From: Geosiphon pyriformis uo1
Lineage: Eukaryota > Fungi > Glomeromycota
NCBI GenBank assembly: GCA_016748015.1
Contig: JAAOMT010000181.1
Coordinates: 69,784 to 133,783, forward strand
Direction of reading: 5' to 3'
DNA: 64,000 nucleotides
Below are positions 42,701 to 63,650 of the stretch, in pieces. How positions within the stretch are numbered: the stretch's first letter is position 1; each line of letters begins with the position of its first letter. Both the position numbers and the translations under genes were made by a program. A model generated the notes under the pieces. It had not been told where the DNA came from and did no database searches. It saw nothing but the letters and a program-made list of their open reading frames with translations.

Positions 42701-45700
42701 TATAGTTTTTAAAATTTATTGTTTTGTTGTTATTTATTAATTAGTTTGATTGATAATTGTGGTTTCTAATCTTGTTTTATTTTGAAGAAGCAATCTATAT
42801 TTGTATAAAATTTTTTTAGCTTGTAATATACAGTATATTTGTAATTTACAAGAAATTTAATTTTTAAATTTGTTTGATATTTATTTTTAAGTTTTTATTT
42901 TAAAGCTATTTGAGTCTAATATTATTAGTAATAATATCGAATTTTTTAAGATTAAAATAAAGATTAAAATAGTGTAAAGTGCAAATTATTGCTGTTGTTT
43001 TTAATTTAGTAACAAAGTAATATTTTTCTGTTGGTTTTAATGCTCTGTTAATATAGACAATTATTTTTTATTGCTTTAAGATAAGATAATATCAAAAACT
43101 ATATATAAGACATTTATAGCTTAGTTAAAATTTTTTATTAAAGTCAAAACAAACTAAAATTAAAGTTGTTCTTTAAGAATATTAAAGACTTATTATTGTT
43201 TAACTATTTATTTGTATTCAATATTTTTGTTAGTTAAATAGTTAAAAAATTTGGTAATTTTAGAAAATTTTTTAATAAATTTTTGATAATATAATATTAA
43301 TTCAATAAATTCTTTTAATTTAATAGTGTTTTGTAAAATTTTAAAGTTTTTAACAATAATAATTTTTTTTAAATTAGATTTAACTTTTTTTTTATTGACA
43401 ATATAACCAAAAAAAACCAATTTGGTTTTTTTAAAATAATATTTTTTGATATTTAATTTTAATTTTGTTTTTTATAATTATTAAAAAACTTTTTACAAAT
43501 GAATTATATAAGCTTTAAATAATAGTAAATAAATATCAATATTATTAAGATAAACAACTACTAATTTTCAAAGAAATCCAATATAAACAATATTTATAAG
43601 CTTTTAAAATATTGTTAATATATTATATAGTTTAAAAAATATTATATTAAACTTGTAATTTTTTTTTAAATAATGAAAGTTATTTTAAAATAATCTTTAA
43701 GATCTATTATAACTTGTTGGTATTTATTTTTCATCTAATATTGAAAAGTATTTTAATTTTCCAAAAAATTTAATATATTATTAATTTATAGTAAAAAATA
43801 GGCATCTTTAATTATAATATTGTTTAGTTAGTAAAAATTAACATAAAAATGTATTTTTTTATTTTTTTTTAACAAAAACTGAAAAAGTTTATAGATTTAT
43901 TAATAGTTAAATAAGTCTATTGTTAAGTATTTGTTGTACTTTTTTTTAAATAAATTAATAGTTTTTTGTAATAATTTAATAAACTTGTTATTATTTTAAT
44001 TTGATATTGTTCATATAGATTTGATGTTAAACCAAATTAGTTTTTTTCAAATTATTGTTATTTTTAGCAAATATGTTAGTGTATTTAACAATTAATTCTT
44101 TAAGTTATTTTTGTTATTATAGTTCTAATTATTCTATGTTAATTTAATATAATTTTTTAATAACAACATAATAATTTTTAGTAATAAAGATCAATTTAAA
44201 TTTCAAGAAAGAATATCTAATTATTTTTGTGAAATTTAAAACTATTTAAAGTAACTTTTGTTAAAAAATATTACTGTAAATAATTTTACTTTTTAAGTAA
44301 TTATCTAATATAATAAGATAGTTATTAAGATTATAAAATATAACTTTGAATTTTTTAATTTTTTAAGCAAATAAATGTTTGAAATTGAAATTTTATATTC
44401 TTTGCAAATTTGTTGAGTGGTATTAAGTATAAGCAAATATAAGCTTTACAAATTTCTCTAAAAAGTAATAGAATAATTGTTCTTGGTAATTTAAGAATTT
44501 GGTAAGATTTATTTTGTATATTAAAAACTATGTTTATTGAAACTGTAAATTGTCTAGTTGATTCAAAATTTTGAGTTTTTTTTTTACTTTTGCCAAGTTT
44601 TTCTTAATTTTTAACTAATTGTAAATTCGAAATATTAATTAAAAATAAATAAATAGCTTAAACAATTTTTTTAGCATTTAATTTTGAATAATTTTTTGGT
44701 TTTATTTTAGAGTATTATTGTAATATCTTTAATATATTCTGTATTAATAAATTTTATTCTAATATTGATTTTTTTGTTTTTCAATTGTTTTTGTTAAAAT
44801 TTTAAAAGCAATTTTTAGATTAATTTTTGTAAGCAATTTTGGCTTTAAAATAAAAATATTTTTTTCTGAATATCGAAAATTATATTTTATATTAATTTTA
44901 TGGGCTTTTTTTGGCTTAAATTTTTGCTTATTGTTGTCAAAATATTTGAAAAATAAAGTAAATTGGTTTTTAATAAGATAGATTAAAATTGTTAGAGCTT
45001 TTTTTTAATTTTTTCAAATTCAATTTCTTTTTAATTATCTTTAGTAAGTAATAATATGCTAAAAACATAGTATTTAAAACATTATATAGAGCATAATATA
45101 TTTTTTACAAAGTTAAATATTTATTTGTTTTAATTATTAAATTTGTGTTTTTTTAAAAAAATAGACATGACTAGAAATTAAATAGTAGAATTCAACTTTA
45201 TTTTCATAATTAAATTCAGTTAGTTTTATAATATATTCAATATATTTTGCCTTTTTTATTTAACAAACATTTACTTAGAATTTTTTATTAATTAGAATTA
45301 TTATAAGTTCATAAATTATTTTAATATCATGTAAATAGTAATATAGTTTATTAAAAGTACTATTGTATACTATAATAAAAATATTCTATATTTTACTTTT
45401 TCTAAAATAAAAAAAGCATATTGACAGATCTGATTGCAGACTTTTTTTATTATTACAATATTAACTTAGTTGTATTCTTTTAATAGCAATTTTTTATATG
45501 TGAAACAAGATGTGTTGTTCTATTTTCTATTTTTTTTTGAGCTGTCAAATTGTTTTTGATAGCAGGCTTTATAATAATAAAAAATACAAGTTTTTTTTTA
45601 AATAATATACAAACTTCTATAAATAAAAGCTTTTTGTTATAATTTTTACATTTAAGTAAAATATAAATTAATTGTTTTCTTAGATTTAGTTTTGAATATA

Positions 45701-53639: not shown

Positions 53640-56600
53640 TTAGATTTGTTTCATTCATGACAAATCATCAGCATTTCTGTTGTCTTTTCCCTTTTTATAA
53701 TGTATAGTGTAAGTATATAGTGATAGTGCCATTTTCTATCTTGATTGTCTTCTATCTCCAAATTCTTGTTTATGAAGTGCTGTTAATCTCTTGTGATTCA
53801 TGTATATATCAAACTTCTGGCTCAAGTATTCACTCCATTTCATGACTGCCCAATAAATTGCTAAATGTTCTAATTCTGGTGTTCCATAATTTCTTTCAGT
53901 TGGAGTTAAATCTCGGCTGGCATATACAACTGAATGTTCTCTTCCATCTGGTCCTCTCTGTGATAGTACTGCTCCCAATGCTTGGTCTAATATATTGGTG
54001 GTAATGATGAATGATTTATTGTGATCTAAATAGATCAGTACTAAAGCTTGTATAAGCTTTCTTCTTAAAATATCAAAAGCTTCTTGTTGTGCTTCTGTCT
54101 ATTTGTATTTCACATTTTTGGTTTGAAGATGATTAAGTGATTGGGCTATCTTGGAAAAGTTTTTGATGAAGCATTGATAATAGTCTGTAAATCCCAAAAA
54201 TGACTTTAACTCTGTTATATTGGTTGGTACTGAAAAGTTTTTGACTATCTCTATCTTTTTTGGATCTGTTTTAATGCCATCTTTGCTTACTATGTGCCCT
54301 AAAAAGTTTAATTTTGTCTTGTCAAAGAAGCACTTATTGGCGTTTAACTTTAGCCCTGTTCATCGTAGCCTTTCGAACACTTGTTGTAAATGATGCAAAT
54401 GATCATCAAATGTTTTGGAGAACATATTGGTGTCATCTAAATAAATGACTACTGATTTCCACAACAAGCCAGTATATACTATTTCCATTAGCTATTGAAA
54501 TGTGGCTGGTGCATTTGTTAAGCCGAATGGCATCACTTCAAATTCAAAATTTCCCTCCTGTGTTGTGAATGTGGTCTTTTCTTTGTTCACTGAATTTATA
54601 GCTACTTGTCAGTAACCACTATCTAAATCCAATGTTGAAAACTATTTGTTTTTTCCAAAAGCATCAAATAATTCTTAAATCTGTGAAGTTGGATAGCTGT
54701 CTCCATGTGTGACTCTATTAAGCTTTCTGTAGTCCATGCAAAAGCAGATTTTCCCATTCTTTTTCCAGACGAGTATTACTGGTAATGACCATGAGCTTAT
54801 TGATGACTGAATTAACCCATTGTTGAGCATCTGGTTGATTTCTTGACAAATGATCTTATGGCTGGCAGGTGGTACTCTGTATGCTCATTGTTTTATTGGC
54901 ATTGTATCTCCAGTTTTGATCTGGTGCTGGATGATATCAGTTCTGCCAAATTTATTTTTACTGGCAAAGATGTCATTGAATTTATTGAGCAACATCTTCA
55001 GCTGCATGCATTAGAGTGGATCTAGATTCCCCACGTTTATTTGTTCCAATTGTTCTGGTTGGAGCAAATAACATTCATTTTGTCCATATATTGTTTGTGA
55101 TGTGATGTCAACATATCCACAAAGCTGTGAAAAGTCTGGAATAGGGTTTGGTAGTTGGTTTTCTATTTCAGTAGTTAAATGTTCTATAATGGTTCTTTCT
55201 GGTATCTTCATAACCTTTCCGGTGTTGTTGTAAATGAGAATTTTGATGTGGCTGTAGTTCCTGGCTGGTATGTAGAGATTGATAAGTCCAATTTCTCCTG
55301 ATTTACAATGTGCTGCTTCTGCTTCAAAAATCTGGTTCTGATCCTTTACTTTCCTTTTTATGACTACCATATACTGGTTATATAGTGGAATAGAAATTGG
55401 TTGACCAGTAAAGATAATTTCTCCCTTGTCAATAATCTCTTCTTCCACCATATTAACTGATATATCTATTCTATTTGTTGATCCAAATCCCTGTATCTCT
55501 TTAACTGTAATCCCTAATTCTTTTCTGTTTTCCATTGACACTAACTAAGCTATTTTGACCAGAGACAGGAATATTGCCTGCACTATCTTTTCATTTGGCT
55601 CTATTACATAGGCTTTTTCTGAATTGTTTTGTAGCATAGCAATGATATTTTCCACATATCCTGCATCAATTATTTCTCCTTTGATGTTGATTTTTCTTTT
55701 TGCTAAATTACTTATAGATGCTAATTGAATTATTGTGGTTGCTAGAATTTCCAATGCTATTTTCAGATCAATGTAAGTATGCAAATGTGGTTTCAATTTG
55801 ATAGCATCTTTTTCAGGATATCTCAGATTAAACTTTGCATCAGTATCATGCACACACTCTGGCATGATACCTTTATTATTGTCACTGAACCACTTTAGCT
55901 CTTGTTCTTTGGTGAGGTCAGGAAGTGCTATAAATGTTTTGGAGTTTGGATTTGAGTCCAAATTGCTGTTATCTTTGTTGCCATATTGAACAGAACTAGA
56001 ACTGATGTTTTCATTATTGTTATTGTCGGAGTTTGAATCAGAATTGAAAATTGATTCCAATTCTAATGTGCAGCTGCTGATTGGTTCTTCTTCTTCTGAG
56101 ATTATATAGATTATGCAGATTGGTGGATTGTAAATAAGATCACACTCATTACAATATTGAAAGTCACATGGGATCAAATAGTGGTCACATAGTTGAGTGT
56201 TTAACTGTGTTAGCCACTGCTTCTGCTTCTCTCTTGTCAGTGCTAATCTCTGGTAATGCTCATGGAATTCCTTGGGATCATCTTCAATGTTACCAAAGAC
56301 ATTAAATATTTGGAAGTACTTAGGTTCAGGTAGCAACAGAGGGTTGTTTTTTATTTCCAGTAGTTTGCTGATTGTCATGCTTTTTGCTTTTGCACTTGCC
56401 ATTCTTCAGAGTTTATGCTTATCATGTGGCTATCCTTCCAATTGTTGCAATGCTCATTTCCAGGCATTGTCAATTAGTGTTCCTTTGCATACCCAGTCGT
56501 TGATTAGGATTGTATACTGGCAGATTTCATTGCACATTTTTCTATGTCCAAAAATGTCATTCCATATTCCTTTGTCCAGGAGAGTCTTTCCACAAGCTAA

Positions 56601-57307
56601 ACATGAGGTATTATCCCATTTTTTCACTCATTTTGGTTGTCTAAAGTGTTCTAGAATACACGCTTGGCAGTAAAGTTTGGTCGCTGTTGAGTATTCTTTG
56701 TTGTTGCCACAGTATGCACCCATTGATGACAATTTCTTGTTGCAATCGACGCATATAAGCTTTGGTCAATGATAGTTAGAGAGTTGTGGTAGTGTATATT
56801 GATGAGGGGTATAATTGTCAGTTGGTAGTAACTCTTTTTCCTTTACTTTTCCTTTTTATTTGCTGTTTTCTTCCCATTCCTAGCTTGGTGTTGGTTTGTT
56901 CTCATCATTGTTGGTCCAGTTCAGGTCATTAGTTTCTCAGGTAAGTTCTTCTTTTTGCTTTTCTTTGGTGTTGTTATCCCATAAGAGTATCAGCAGCAGT
57001 TTGTTATGGTCAACATTGGCTCACAAGACCTGATATGCTTCCCATGTAGGTTTTTTCTCTTTTTCCTTAAACTCGATAAGTGGTGTTGGTATGTTGATGG
57101 TTTTGAAGTGGCCACACATGGCTGGTACAAGTGTATGTTGACCATTTTGGCTGAGTTGGAGCTCTTGTGTTGTCCAATCAAGTATAACATTTGTTTTAGT
57201 AAGCCAGTCATTACCAACTAGTGCTTATTATTAAGTGGCTTCCATCACCAAAACTTTGATAGGGACTATAATACCATTGACTTCAAAAGGGAAGTCATCA
57301 ATCTCAC
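53640..57307 (-). pseudogene. Gypsy I pol fragment: protease C-terminal part, Cys-rich domain, dUTPase, spacer, RT, RNase H
   Basis: Colinear motifs EIDDFPFEVNG, WDNTSCLACG, IIDAGY, QGFGST, IYLDDT, VVYASR...PELEHLA. Confidence 0.85.
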
Positions 57308-58323
57308 TGTTACCAGAGGTTTTTGGTCTCTTTTTTTAAATGTTGGTAATGTTGATTTGCTGTGAATTCACGTTTTCAGAAAGTAATTGAACCTCCAATA
57401 ACTGAATTTATCTTCAAATTATCTCCTATAATTTGAACTGCTGGGCTTATAAGTGGAATGGCCAATTTTTTGCCAGTTACTTTATGTAGTTACATTGTAA
57501 TAAATGTCAACTCTTTTGCAGGAATTGCTCGTCTGAAAGTTCACTAAAAATGTGTAATTACTTTGCTGTAAAAGTCAACTTTTCTACAGGAATCTTGTCT
57601 GTAGGCTACCCTAGTGATTATAGTAAGAAAAAATAAAAAAAAATAAAAAAAATGTAAAAGAAATAGAATTTTGTCAAAAGAAACGTTTTCTATCCAGGCC
57701 TGGAGTCACTAACAGTTTATTGAAATTGGTAGCTAATCAATTTCGAAATGTTAGTTGGGTTTTGGGGATTTTCCAAGTACAATAATTAAAGAATTTGGTT
57801 TTTTGAATTATTTGATATTTATTTCTTTTTGTGTGTATAGGAACAGTTTTAAAAGATAAATCTAAAGTAAGATACATTTTCCAGAAGAGAAAAGCTCTTC
57901 TTTTATACAACTTGTTGTAGTACTAGTTTATGAACTTGCACTTTTTTTTCTCTTTGCCCAAATTCCGGCAAACTAAAGATACATTTTGATGAACTACAAG
58001 TTATTTTGCTGAACTATTGATTAATTTGGGTGAACTATTCATAATTTCGGCAAATTTCTGTAAATTTCGGCAAATTTCTTATAAATTTCGGCGAATTTCT
58101 GTAAATTTCAGTGAATTTTTGAATGTTACAAAGTTCAGGGTATTGTGTAATTTGATCATCTTACTTTCTGTTATACTAATTAGATTATTTTAATTGAATT
58201 GTGATATGTGATAATTGATTAAATAATAAATGATAATTTGAAATGATATTAATATACTAATGAATTATAGGAATTATAAGAGTAATTTCATGCTAATCAA
58301 TAGCTAAAATTTTACTGGTAACA
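57308..58323 (-). repeat. 3' LTR of Gypsy H (1016 bp)
   Basis: TGTTACCAG...CTGGTAACA termini. About four ~20-bp tandem units AATTTCGGCAAATTTCTGTA at ~58043-58118. Confidence 0.92.
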
Positions 58324-58817
58324 TAATCTCCTCCTCAAGACTGAGCTCCGTCGAAGTCCAAGCACTATCTGTAATATTGAGATAGTGATCTAAAATGATT
58401 GAAGTAATCTGGTTTGAAAATTGTTGAAATTTCAGTTCTGTGAATTTGCCAATGTATTGAACTTTCATTAATTGCAGTATTGGATTTTGTAGAACATTTT
58501 CACAAGTATTAAACAAATCATAGAGTCTAAAAGCTGCTCTAAGTTTGTAGCAAGTGTTTATTGGTCCAGCTGCTGTTTTGAATTCATTGTAGATTTGTTT
58601 TTGTATAACTTCAGAAGTGAGATTTGTTGCTTCAAGTTTCAGTTTTCGTTCATAAAGTGTTTTTCCAATTTGAAAGTATTTATAGATAGGGGTGTGTTCA
58701 TTGTTCTGTTCATTAAGAAGTAGTAGTAGTTTTTGTTGTATTGTAGCATTTGGTGGAATGTCAATAGGGGCAATTAGCAGATTTTCTTCTAGTGCCTGCT
58801 TCAAAAGTCTTGGTAAT
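58304..58817 (-). CDS. Gypsy H ORF3 (N-terminus lost in the N gap), soluble protein of unknown function reading through the PPT into the LTR
   Basis: At least 166 open codons, with motifs IYKYFQIGKTL...LRAAFRLYDLF...YIGKFT. No transmembrane segment visible. Confidence 0.75.
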
Positions 58818-58986
58818 NNNNNNNNNNNNNNNNNNNNNNNNATAATAAAATTGACTAATTATGAAAAGAGAGAATAAAGAAAATTATTTTTTGAATATGG
58901 AGTTTTTATTTGTTTTTGGGTTTGGGTGTTTTGTAATTATTTACTATTTTTGTCTTTGTGTTTTTAGTAGAGAATTATTGTAAAAT

Positions 58987-60372
58987 TTAAGTGTTCAAGT
59001 TTGGTTGTTGTTCTATTATAATTATTGGTTCTAAATTTCAGGGAATATCTTCAGGATTAATTAAAGAGGAATGTGTACCAATTTGTAGAATTAATGGTTC
59101 AGGATTGTTTCTGGAATGATAGTGTTTCAGTCTGTCTCCATGTGCAACTTTTGCTAATATTTTGTTATCAAGTCTTAACTTATATGATCCATTGCCTAGA
59201 ATTTCGTGAATATAAAATGGTCCATCCCATTTGTTTTCAAATTTCCCACTCCATTGTTTTTCAGCCTTAGTTCTGTATAAGAGAACTTTATTTCCAACTT
59301 TAAATTCGTTGATAATAGATGGTAATTTGTTGTCATGTCTTTCTTTTTGTTGAGCTTGGGAATGTTTAATATGAGCTGCTGTTATTCTTCTTTTTCCTTC
59401 CAGTGTACTAAGAAGAGTGTAGGCTCTTTTTTGGAGTGTCTCTTGAAAGTTTTCTTCATTGATTGGTTGCACTGGGTATGTTTCCACTGTGAAATTAATT
59501 GGTAATATTGCTGTCCTTCCATAAGTAAGATCAAATGGTGTGTGTTTCGTAGTATCTTGTTTTAGTGTTCTGTATGCTAGTAATACTGATGGAATAAAGA
59601 TATCCCATTCCTGTTCAAAGTCTGTTGAGACTTTGGCTAAAGATTCACACAATGTTCTGTTAAAACGTTCTACAAGTCCATTTGTTTGAAAGTGATAAGG
59701 TGATGATAAAGGTCTTTTGACATTGAACTGTTCACAAATTTTTTGTATCAAGTTGTTCACAAAATGTGTTCCTTGATCAGATAAGAGTTCAATTGGGCAT
59801 CCATGTCTACAGATAATGTCTTTATAGATGAAATTTGCTACTGATTTTGCATCTGCTCTTTGGATGGCTCTAGCTTCAGGCCATTTGGTAAGATAATCCA
59901 CTGCAACTGCAATATAACGATTTCCTTGGGTTGTGATAGGTAATGGTCCGACTAAATCAATTCCAACTCTGTCAAAAGGTTGTCCAACTTTGATTGGATT
60001 TAAAGGTTCTGTGGGGTGAGTTCCTCCTCTTCTCTGGCAGTTATCACAAGATTCTACATATTGTCGAATGTCTTTTTGCATGTAAGGCCAAAAATAATGT
60101 TCAAGGGTTCTTTGAATTGTTCCCTCTTTTCCCAAGTGTGCTAAAGACAGATCTGTGTGCATGTTGTATAAAATTGTTTCTTTTTCATTCTTTTGTACTA
60201 ATCTGAGTGGCTGGTTTGGTTTTCTGTGATTTTTATAATAAATTTTGTTCTGGTGTATGAAATATTGTTTTGATTGGTGTTGTAAGTGGTGTTTTTCACT
60301 TGGAGACCAGTTTTCTGGTATGATAAGAGTCTCCAAATAATTTTTAAGATTGCTGTAGTTTCTGGGATCTAT
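58987..60372 (-). CDS. Gypsy H integrase (HHCC-DDE-GPF, no chromodomain); start mutated ATG>ATA, open to a TGA at 59038
   Basis: HTDLSLAH...CDNC; GIDLVG, LSDQG and GLVERFN; WDGPFYI. Confidence 0.92.
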
Positions 60373-60429: not shown

Positions 60430-61682
60430 TTAATCTTGTCTTATTCTTGAGAGGCTATCAACATTGATATGTAGTTTTCTTGGTTTGTGGTGTACAATAT
60501 ATCTGTAGTCTGCTAGAAAGTCATTCCATCGAGACTGTTTGGCACTTTGTTCAGTTTTCTTTTTATTGAGCCATTTGAGACCAATGTTGTCCGTTATTAT
60601 GTCAAATTTTTTTCCATTTTTCAGATATTGTTGAAAATGTTTAAAAGCCCAAATAACTGCAGCAGCTTCTAATTTAGTTGAGCCATATTTGAGTTCTGTT
60701 GGCTTGAGTGTTCTGCTGGCATAGGCAATAACTTGTTCTTGGCCATTTTTATCCAATTGTGATAAAATGGCACCAAATGCTATGTGTGAGGCATCAGTAG
60801 CTAATTGGAATCGTTTGTTGAAGTCTGAGTAAACAAGAACTGGGACTGTTGTCAATTTTGTTTTGAGAATTTCAAAAGCTTTTTGTTGTTCTTCAGTCCA
60901 TTTGTATGGTATGTTTTTGTTGGTAAGATAATTGAGTGGTTTGGCAATTTCTGAGAATCTTTTTATGAATTTTCGATAGTAAGAGGCTAATCTCACAAAT
61001 CCTCTTAGTTCTGTAGTATTTCTGGGGGTTTGAAAGTTTTTAACAGCATTGATTGTTCTTGGATTTGGTTTGATTCCATCTTTACTAACTATGTGTCCAA
61101 GAAAGATCAAACTTGTTTTTCCAAAGTAACATTTCTCAATATTTAACTTTAATCCTGCTTTCTGTAATTGTTGAAAAACTTCTCACAGGTAAATGAGATG
61201 GGCTTCGAAGCTTGGTGAGTATACATCAGTATCATCAAGATAAACAACTACTGATTACCACAAGAGCCCTTCATAGACAACATCCATGAGCTGCTGAAAT
61301 GTTGCTGGTGCATTGCAGAGTCCAAAAGGCATAACATTAAACTCATAATTTCCTTCTTGAGTGGTGAATGCTGTTTTGGGTCTATCTTTTGGGTCCATTT
61401 TGACTTGTCAGTATCCACTTTCCAGGTCTAAAGTTGAAAAGAACTTGGCTTTTCCCAGAGCATCTAGCATGTCATCAATTCTTGGAAGAGGGTAGGCATC
61501 TCCAATTGTAACACTATTCAGTTGTCTATAATCAACACAGAATCTAATTTTTCCGTTTTTCTTTTTAACCAAAACTACTGGTAAGACCCAAGGACTTCTT
61601 GATGGTTGAATCAATCCGTTATTGAGCATTCTTTGGACCTCTTCTCTGATAAATTGGTGGCTGGCAGGTGGCACTCGATAAG
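60430..61682 (-). pseudogene. Gypsy H reverse transcriptase and RNase H
   Basis: [27 protein letters not shown]; LATDAS, IAYASR, IITDN. Stops at 61408 and ~61185 are derivable from TGG and CGA. Confidence 0.93.
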
Positions 61683-61907
61683 NNNNNNNNNNNNNNNNNN
61701 NNNNNNNNNNNNNNNNNNNNNNNNNNNNNNNNNNNNNNNNNNNNNNNNNNNNNNNNNNNNNNNNNNNNNNNNNNNNNNNNNNNNNNNNNNNNNNNNNNNN
61801 NNNNNNNNNNNNNNNNNNNNNNNNNNNNNNNNNNNNNNNNNNNNNNNNNNNNNNNNNNNNNNNNNNNNNNNNNNNGTATTAAGAACTATGTTTACTGGAA
61901 CTGTAAA

Positions 61908-62320
61908 TTGTCCAGTTGAACCAAAACCTTGAGTTCCTTTTTCACTTTTTCCCAATTGTTCTCTGTTGTTTACTGATTGTAAACCCGAAATGTTGATTAA
62001 GGGTAAGTAAATTGCTTGAGCAATTTTTTTAGCATGTTCAATTTTGAATGGTTTGTTTGTCTCATTCTATAACATGATGGTAATGTCTCCAGTGTATCCT
62101 GCATCTATAATTCCTCCTCTAATATTGATTTCTTTGCTTGCCAATGATGATCTGGAGGCAATTTGAACCATTGCTCCTGGTGGAATTTCAAGAGCAATTT
62201 TTAGATTGATTTTTGTCAAAGACTTTGGTTGGAGAATCAAAGTATCTTTTCTTGGGTATCTCAAGTCATATCCAGCATCAATTTTGTGTGCTTTTTCTGG
62301 TCTGATTCCTTGGCCATGGT
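61908..62320 (-). pseudogene. dUTPase domain in Gypsy H pol
   Basis: All five trimeric dUTPase motifs in order: DAGYDL, ASRSSLA, GGIIDAGYTG, KIAQAI, GTQGFGSTG. One TAG at 62067. Confidence 0.92.
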
Positions 62321-63299
62321 TGTCAAAATATTTAAATTGTAGAGGTGGTTGCTTTTCAAGAAGATAGATGGGAGTGGTTAGTAATTCTTCTACTTGTTCA
62401 GATACTCCAAATTCGATTTCATTTTCATCATTCTCATCTGACAGAGGAATGCTAAGAGCATAACATTCTAAACACCATTGGTCATCACAAGGCATAACAC
62501 ATTCTTCACACAATTGAATGTTCATTTGCTCTAATCGTTGAATTTAAGCTTCTTTGGTTGGATATGTGTGGCTTGCAATTTGGTGGTAGGTTTCTACTTT
62601 ATTTTCATAATCAAATCCAGCTAATTCCATGGTGTACTCAATATATTCAGCTTTTTTCATTTGGCAGACATCTTCTTGAGTGGCTCTATTGATTAATGCC
62701 ATTGCTAGATCAAAAATCATTTCAGCATCATGAGGGTAGTGGTAAAGTTTATTGAGAGCACTGTTGTATGCTGCATCAAATGGTGTCTCTTTTCTGACTT
62801 TTTCCGAAATTGATAAAGCATATTGACAAGTTTGATCACATACTCCTCTTCTCATTGCTACATCAATCCAATTGCATTCTTCTGGTAGTATTTCTCCACA
62901 TGTAAGGCAAGGTGTGTTGTCTTATTTTCCACTTCTTTTTGGAGATCCAAATCGTTTTTTATGGCATGCTTTGCAAAAGTAACAGGTACGAGTTTCATAT
63001 TCCTCTTCTGAAAAAATACATGCTCTCATTAATGAAAGTTTTTTGCTGCAATCTTTGCATTTGAGTGGAATATAGGGTGGTTGTTTCTGTGATTCTGGTG
63101 TAGAATATCTAACTTTCTTCCATCCCCTTAATTCTTTGAAAATCTCTTGTTCGGTTTCTTCAGCCCAATTGAATGTTGATCCAAGAGCCATGTAGGTTTC
63201 AGTAAGTAGCATTTCTTTCTCCTCTTCAAATTCAAATACTGGAGCTTTTTCTGATCGTTTGTTAAAGGTACCACAGATTGCAGGTACTATGGTATATTG

Positions 63300-63650
63300 T
63301 TCTTGGTATGAGATTTTAAGTTCTTGAGTTTCTCAGTTCAGGTTTGCATTGGTCTTGAAAAGCCAATCATTTCCGACTAGAGCTTGATATTGGGGTGCAT
63401 CCATAACAAGAACTTTAACTAGAATGGTGATTCCATCAATTGAAAAAGAGAAATCATCAATTTCTCCTACTGGAGTCTTCTTCATACCATCAGCTGTGAC
63501 AATAACTGTTTGAGCTGGTCTGTCTATGTTTTGTTTGAGTTGTTGCATCAGCTGGTAAGTGATGATACTTCCAGCTGATCCACTATTTAAGATTAAGCAA
63601 ATGGATTTTCCTTCCACTGTAGCTTCTGTGTACATGGCAGTAATTGCTTT
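63300..63650 (-). pseudogene. Gypsy H aspartic protease (catalytic D mutated to N)
   Basis: AMYTEATVEGKSICLILNSGSAGSII...ALVGNDWL. LILNSGS is LILDSGS after one G>A change. Confidence 0.88.

Follow-up and report, generated by a model that had tools for sequence, protein, structure and literature searches.

The window (the whole stretch of Geosiphon pyriformis uo1 DNA analysed here, 64,000 nucleotides in length) contained only three Gypsy elements, H, I, and G, and all three (3/3) carried the same Cys-rich domain of about 200 amino acids (Table 1). In element H, this domain was located in the pol frame on the minus strand (core 63059-62463), between the protease and the dUTPase: the frame from 63635 downwards encoded the protease, about 270 residues with no Pfam match, and then the dUTPase, while reverse transcriptase (RT), RNase H, and finally integrase were found downstream (tblastn and Pfam). 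Element H displayed protease, RT, RNase H, and integrase (H2C2 plus rve) in the order of a Ty3/Gypsy (Metaviridae) pol, and its dUTPase lay inside pol between protease and RT; the general gene order in these elements was protease, Cys-rich domain, dUTPase, an unassigned stretch of about 150 residues, and RT. The integrase of element H matched only H2C2, rve, and, weakly, SH3 in Pfam, with no match to a chromodomain, as had been proposed in an earlier sequence-only reading of this DNA. The 5' part of element H extended beyond the window. The RT core and most of gag read N both in the window (61683-61875 and 58818-58841) and in copies of the same family (L031 and L032), and RT and gag were therefore judged only from flanking pieces and database proteins (tblastn; RVT_1 in related copies). 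A 166-residue ORF with no Pfam match was additionally located downstream of the H integrase (58307-58804, minus strand).

Table 1. Positions of the Cys-rich domain, its predicted zinc sites, and the neighboring pol features in the window
Feature	Position	Strand	Evidence and remarks
Aspartic protease, element H	63336..63635	-	Pfam Asp_protease_2 E 1.2e-8; gag-asp_proteas E 2.8e-8
Variable charged linker from protease to domain, same frame	63060..63332	-	Frame reading; family I version longer and of low complexity
Predicted zinc site 1, CxxC-x24-CxxC, element H	62964..63059	-	Cys codons 63059, 63050, 62975, 62966
Short basic linker FGxPKRxGKWDN, element H	62910..62963	-	Trp codon changed to stop TAA 62924-62922
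Predicted zinc site 2, CxxC-x19-CxxxC then QY, element H	62826..62909	-	Invariant Cys
Predicted acidic helical core, about 100 residues, element H	62511..62825	-	AlphaFold2 helices; net charge -6 to -12; TAA 62546-62544 inside
Predicted zinc site 3, CxxC-x3-C-x4-CxxC, element H	62463..62510	-	Outer four Cys invariant; low model confidence
Acidic linker from domain to dUTPase	62340..62462	-	Frame reading; longer and Asn/Asp/Ser-rich in family I
dUTPase, element H	61887..62339	-	Stop at 62069-62067; Pfam PF00692 E 2.2e-11; tblastn
RNase H part of RT, element H	60430..61110	-	Pfam RT_RNaseH E 3e-35
Integrase, element H	59038..60336	-	Pfam Integrase_H2C2 E 1.9e-17, rve E 6.8e-13; weak SH3 match
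Same Cys-rich domain, element I	56121..56795	-	tblastn E 2e-74 (intact I-like query); translation
Hypermutated relic of the domain, element G	45092..45680	-	tblastn, three frame-shifted pieces, E 1e-34; local GC about 15%

The minus strand from 63332 to 62070 formed one open frame, interrupted only by two stops within the H domain: TAA 62924-62922, where intact copies carried a Trp codon, and TAA 62546-62544, where a Gln codon was present at the same spot in intact copies. The sequence-only reading had placed the domain at 62440-63065, which was a good fit to the core, and the motifs that it quoted for H (CKDC, YFCKAC, DNTPCLTCG, CDQTCQY, YPHD, and LCEECVMPCDDQWCLEC) were all found. Natural copies with an uninterrupted domain (L031, L006, L016, L028, L045, and L046) were used in place of the reconstructed consensus that had been suggested; tblastn with such copies delimited the H domain to 63089-62442 (E 4e-129), and PF00692 matched the dUTPase of intact copies with E values of 6.9e-23 and 3.1e-17. 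A further copy in element I and a relic in element G had also been named in that reading, and both were recovered by tblastn (Table 1). The domains of H and I shared 35-38% identity, and that of I contained six in-frame stops and one Cys-to-Tyr change in site 3.

The sequence comparison was applied to three lineages of the domain (H, I-like, and the metagenomic protein P0137), which shared 38-46% identity. Twelve Cys residues were invariant across the three lineages and fell into three groups of four: (i) site 1, CxxC-x21-24-CxxC; (ii) site 2, CxxC-x19-CxxxC followed by QY; and (iii) site 3, CxxC-x8-CxxC, within which an inner fifth Cys varied, as did several other Cys residues of the domain. 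Sites 2 and 3 flanked a helical segment of about 100 residues. Among the Cys-holding columns, 12 of 24 were fully invariant Cys, versus 35 invariant columns among the 179 others (Fisher p = 0.003). From this arrangement of three times four invariant Cys residues, three predicted zinc sites were inferred. The remaining invariant residues included KKL, EY, KWD, Trp-x-Asp, TP, a His, and PT, and no recognizable catalytic motif was present among the invariant residues of the three-lineage alignment. Further lineages from the search of cluster representatives (see below) kept the Cys pattern in the first 100 residues, where most departures were either truncated gene models or Cys-to-Tyr changes, which require only one G-to-A transition; Cys conservation in this part held over more copies than those from which it had been proposed. 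About 12 Cys positions together with WDN and CQY stood as conserved positions, while the PHD tripeptide, listed with them in the sequence-only reading, was not invariant and was replaced by PED, SHD, or PHN in other copies. Sites 1 and 2 were also considered as an internal duplication, which was rejected (hhalign probability 4%).

Apart from the short basic linker, the domain was acidic over its whole length, with a pI of 4.6-5.9 and a net charge of -5 to -15. The linkers on both sides were charged and of low complexity, and differed between lineages in both length and sequence; such poor conservation of the flanks would be anticipated if the domain folds on its own within the polyprotein. The CX2CX4HX4C spacing of zf-CCHC did not occur in the domain, which had an acidic pI and no Pfam match, and gag carried its own CCHC knuckle, so that the Cys-rich domain does not replace the nucleocapsid. 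These results, together with the absence of Pfam matches in intact copies, agreed with the earlier proposal that the domain was neither a standard Ty3/Gypsy pol domain nor a gag CCHC knuckle.

The AlphaFold2 model, built on a 35-row alignment whose depth came almost wholly from one genome, had a low overall confidence (mean pLDDT 65) and contained six helices (residues 88-190). The helical core was predicted confidently, with pLDDT of 80-92 over about residues 90-150 and block values of 79-92 for residues 91-140; the zinc knuckles had moderate confidence (70-87), while site 3, at low confidence, was effectively unmodeled. This model and the three groups of invariant Cys residues fitted the earlier suggestion of three Zn sites around a helical core. 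The first 100 residues modeled alone gave a poor result (mean pLDDT 58.6), and the weak structural neighbors of this low-confidence model were almost all small zinc modules, none of them significant; those of site 2 were C1, B-box, and GATA modules. Since sites 1 and 2 aligned separately to small zinc modules, the models suggest that the two sites may be sequential rather than cross-braced.

The search for relatives covered both sequence and fold: (i) Pfam, tried with window pieces as well as intact copies, gave no domain match above chance, nor did NCBIfam or PHROGs, and Pfam applied to three intact representatives at E <= 10 gave no family apart from chance EGF rows; (ii) a profile search of PDB sequences had a best E of 0.22; (iii) the ESM Atlas gave a best score of 0.79 by features, which was not meaningful, and TM <= 0.36 by shape; (iv) Foldseek against PDB and BFVD found nothing at E <= 0.001; and (v) VIA-align wide with both models gave no significant match. 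The Pfam, AlphaFold, and Foldseek checks that had been suggested along with the first description of the domain accordingly gave no confident match to a described domain in the libraries searched.

A nucleocapsid-like tether, in which the zinc module would hold the dUTPase on the RNA/DNA under reverse transcription, would agree with the position of a zinc module N-terminal to dUTPase in one polypeptide, as in the nucleocapsid-dUTPase of Mason-Pfizer monkey virus, and with the conserved basic patch FGxPKRxGKW between sites 1 and 2. It is nevertheless a distinctly improbable reading, since the net charge of the domain is -5 to -15, about 100 of its residues make up a predicted acidic helical bundle, the CCHC knuckle spacing is absent, and such a knuckle is already provided by gag.

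The G. pyriformis assembly (128 Mb, 792 contigs) was searched in six frames, and the first-look candidates numbered 3,744 with the H query and 3,676 with the I query, figures that are not copy numbers. All of the H-query matches scored (150/150) had E <= 7e-69. Identity between the I query and the copies that it matched was only 57-75%, which indicated that many diverged lineages carry the domain, and at least five or six diverged Gypsy lineages of this genome were found to contain it. The sequence-only reading had described conservation in two divergent families; conservation in diverged families stood, while two families proved too few.

HMMER was run exhaustively against 1.84 billion cluster representatives and yielded 399 proteins at E <= 1e-3, including 293 at E <= 1e-10. 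Among the 30 representatives whose source was looked up, 28 were G. pyriformis gene models and two came from ENA metagenome contigs of two different samples, one of 19 kb (protein P0137) and one of 1.5 kb (P0243). In the 19-kb contig, the element and its flanks had only 67-84% DNA identity to the G. pyriformis genome; this contig was therefore not derived from the present assembly, and the domain occurs in at least one other organism. P0137 (L051:7683-10877) was called with TGA as Trp, six TGA codons interrupted pol on the contig, and the element flanks had 15-26% GC; P0137 appears to represent an element with light hypermutation, whose AT-rich genome of origin is related to, and distinct from, this assembly. 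A word-based protein search seeded on P0137 found only P0137 itself, and a scan of JGI metagenome contigs gave 319 pattern matches with none confirmed.

The H domain (62442-63089) differed from its counterpart in L031 (2469-3116) at 45 sites over 648 nt, and all 45 differences were transitions (15 G>A, 7 C>T, 12 A>G, and 11 T>C) with no transversions; both stops in the H domain likewise differed from the Trp and Gln codons by transitions only. As read from these substitutions, the pattern is consistent with repeat hypermutation of a deamination type, here in a fungus outside the Dikarya.

Pairwise Nei-Gojobori (NG86) dN/dS over the domain, whose absolute ratios are biased by the near-pure transition mutation, was 0.09-0.12 between H and the H2 subfamily (dN 0.10, dS 0.93-1.07), 0.09-0.20 among I-like subfamilies (dS 0.7-1.7), and 0.56-1.15 among decaying copies within the H family. 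Copies of one family mutate under the same transition-only regime, and their values were taken as an empirical neutral reference, which controls the NG86 bias only partly; the between-subfamily values were three to six times lower. The domain was therefore under selection and needed in the lineages that went on transposing. The dN/dS comparison between families that had been called for at the outset returned 0.09-0.20 between subfamilies, indicating purifying selection.

A selectively neutral spacer, or a fragment captured from the host, with a Cys pattern kept only by recent common descent, is very improbable on these data: nearly all known copies do reside in one genome and the flanking linkers are clearly unconstrained, yet 12/12 Cys residues were kept although synonymous divergence between lineages was near or beyond saturation, and dN/dS between subfamilies was only one third to one sixth of that within families. 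The region is very probably a true pol domain that was selected, binds zinc, and belongs to a new family.

As for the neighboring dUTPase, all of the Geosiphon dUTPase-Gypsy proteins examined carried the domain, one of them frame-shifted in its gene model. A related element on a Logan contig (P0273) encoded a 55%-identical dUTPase about 25 residues past the protease end and contained no Cys-rich domain. The domain therefore constitutes an insertion that can be separated from the dUTPase unit rather than a piece of it, and its strict coupling to dUTPase, considered as a candidate, was ruled out by P0273.

Several side observations concerned dUTPase and its surroundings. In a family I copy (L045:3854-4354, equivalent to about 55445-54945 in the window), about 150-170 residues with no Pfam match separated RT from the C-terminal dUTPase motif RGxxGFGSTG; this stretch was conserved between subfamilies (dN/dS 0.36), displayed a dUTPase-like beta-strand motif, and may be a second, degenerate dUTPase-like domain. 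The two I-like copies L045 and L046 had a dS of 0.77 in the zinc domain and 0.19 in the adjacent dUTPase, and this inequality suggests that subfamilies recombined within pol. A distant Gypsy pol from an ENA contig (P0282, 1490 aa) had its dUTPase after the integrase (residues 1367-1489), and it is another case of independent dUTPase placement in pol.

The best overall explanation, and a fairly likely one, is that the domain represents a real, previously unnamed pol accessory domain of dUTPase-bearing Ty3/Gypsy elements; these elements dominate the G. pyriformis genome. With no recognizable catalytic motif and an acidic composition, the domain is most likely a protein-binding adaptor, and its acidity argues against both a nucleocapsid-like chaperone and a DNA reader. 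The more specific mechanism, a zinc-stabilized protein-binding adaptor acting during reverse transcription, was reached by exclusion and is offered tentatively: the domain would be translated within Gag-Pol and packaged in the particle, the protease would free it on its own or still attached to dUTPase as an N-terminal extension, and it would then hold a partner during reverse transcription, this partner being another pol product or a host factor.

The location of the domain directly upstream of dUTPase would also accommodate a counter-defence factor, that is, an acidic zinc domain blocking host attack on the cDNA via uracil or cytosine deamination. It might, for instance, bind a uracil-DNA glycosylase or a deaminase, or mimic the substrate of such an enzyme, and it would thereby complement the adjacent dUTPase. 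Known DNA-mimic inhibitors are acidic, a property that the domain would share with them by analogy, and the 45/45 transitions over 648 nt imply that a deamination-type process acts on these repeats. Such a factor is considered unlikely, however: no known inhibitor was similar to it in sequence or fold (PDB sequences and fold searches), the copies were heavily mutated all the same, position is the sole tie of the domain to uracil metabolism, and the related element P0273 keeps its dUTPase without the domain. There is similarly little likelihood that the domain is an anti-restriction factor in the form of an acidic zinc-scaffolded inhibitor or decoy that, with dUTPase, shields the nascent cDNA from the deaminase/uracil-excision defence of an early-diverging fungus; it would then be a functional analogue of Vif, Vpr, or Ugi with an independent origin.

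An integration-targeting reader was put forward in the sequence-only reading as well, with the zinc fingers reading chromatin marks or methylated/unmethylated DNA in place of a chromodomain. Chromatin readers commonly contain multi-zinc modules, the integrase had no chromodomain match, and the three window copies lay near each other in a repeat-rich stretch. This role is nonetheless quite improbable: PHD finger, CXXC, MBD, and chromodomain profiles gave no match (Pfam, three intact representatives) and the fold searches were not significant, the "PHD" of the domain is merely a tripeptide and a variable one, and the acidic composition is unfavorable for DNA binding. Moreover, the position between protease and dUTPase, far from the integrase, argues against integration targeting, since the domain would be apart from the integrase after processing.

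Accessory domains in the pol of LTR retrotransposons (for example chromodomain, dUTPase, or a second RNase H) mark adaptation to hosts. The present domain explains many of the gene models that are annotated as "hypothetical protein" in G. pyriformis, and it is abundant in an evolutionarily interesting fungus, being so far lineage-restricted. LTR expansion has been reported for Geosiphonaceae (PMC11952901), and the domain belongs to the elements behind this expansion, in a genome with transition-only repeat hypermutation. If it handles uracil or deamination, it would be a first example of fungal retrotransposon counter-defence; if it is merely an adaptor inside the particle, it would be a lineage-specific curiosity.

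Known fungal Ty3/Gypsy elements with dUTPase include PosPlaTy3-5 of Postia placenta, the elements of Phanerochaete chrysosporium, and Tmt1 of Tuber, in which the role of the extra dUTPase is unclear (Novikova et al. 2010, PMC2864245). The G. pyriformis elements resembled them in being LTR retrotransposons with a dUTPase in pol, which in some families lies between protease and RT. The zinc motifs described for those elements were CCHC and HHCC alone, with no mention of a Cys-rich domain by the dUTPase, and the fungal Gypsy literature searched likewise described dUTPase with no Cys-rich domain beside it; the G. pyriformis elements are thus set apart, by description, by a 200-residue domain with three predicted zinc sites before the dUTPase.

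The nearest functional analogy is the betaretroviral nucleocapsid-dUTPase fusion, as known from Mason-Pfizer monkey virus (PMC1802613; review PMC4531489), in which a zinc-binding module is likewise covalently N-terminal to a retroelement dUTPase, zinc being predicted in the present case. This analogy fails on charge, size, and origin: the betaretroviral nucleocapsid is small, basic, composed of CCHC knuckles, and gag-derived, whereas the Cys-rich domain comprises 200 residues, is acidic, contains predicted Cys4 sites and a predicted helical bundle, and lies downstream of the protease alongside a gag CCHC. A second likeness is to the chromodomain of chromoviruses, also a lineage-specific accessory domain added to Gypsy pol. 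That chromodomain is located at the integrase C-terminus and reads histone marks, while the Cys-rich domain lies at the opposite end of pol and has no similarity to it.

Compared to small Cys4 modules (LIM half-sites, ZZ, C1, B-box, and zinc ribbons), the domain gave no significant sequence or fold match, the latter with a low-confidence model, and its combination of a predicted acidic helical bundle with a third site had no counterpart in any library searched. A domain that is large, selected, abundant, and without a relative in any of these libraries is to be regarded as a new protein family; the element itself is a member of the dUTPase-bearing fungal Ty3/Gypsy group, within which the extra domain forms the new family.
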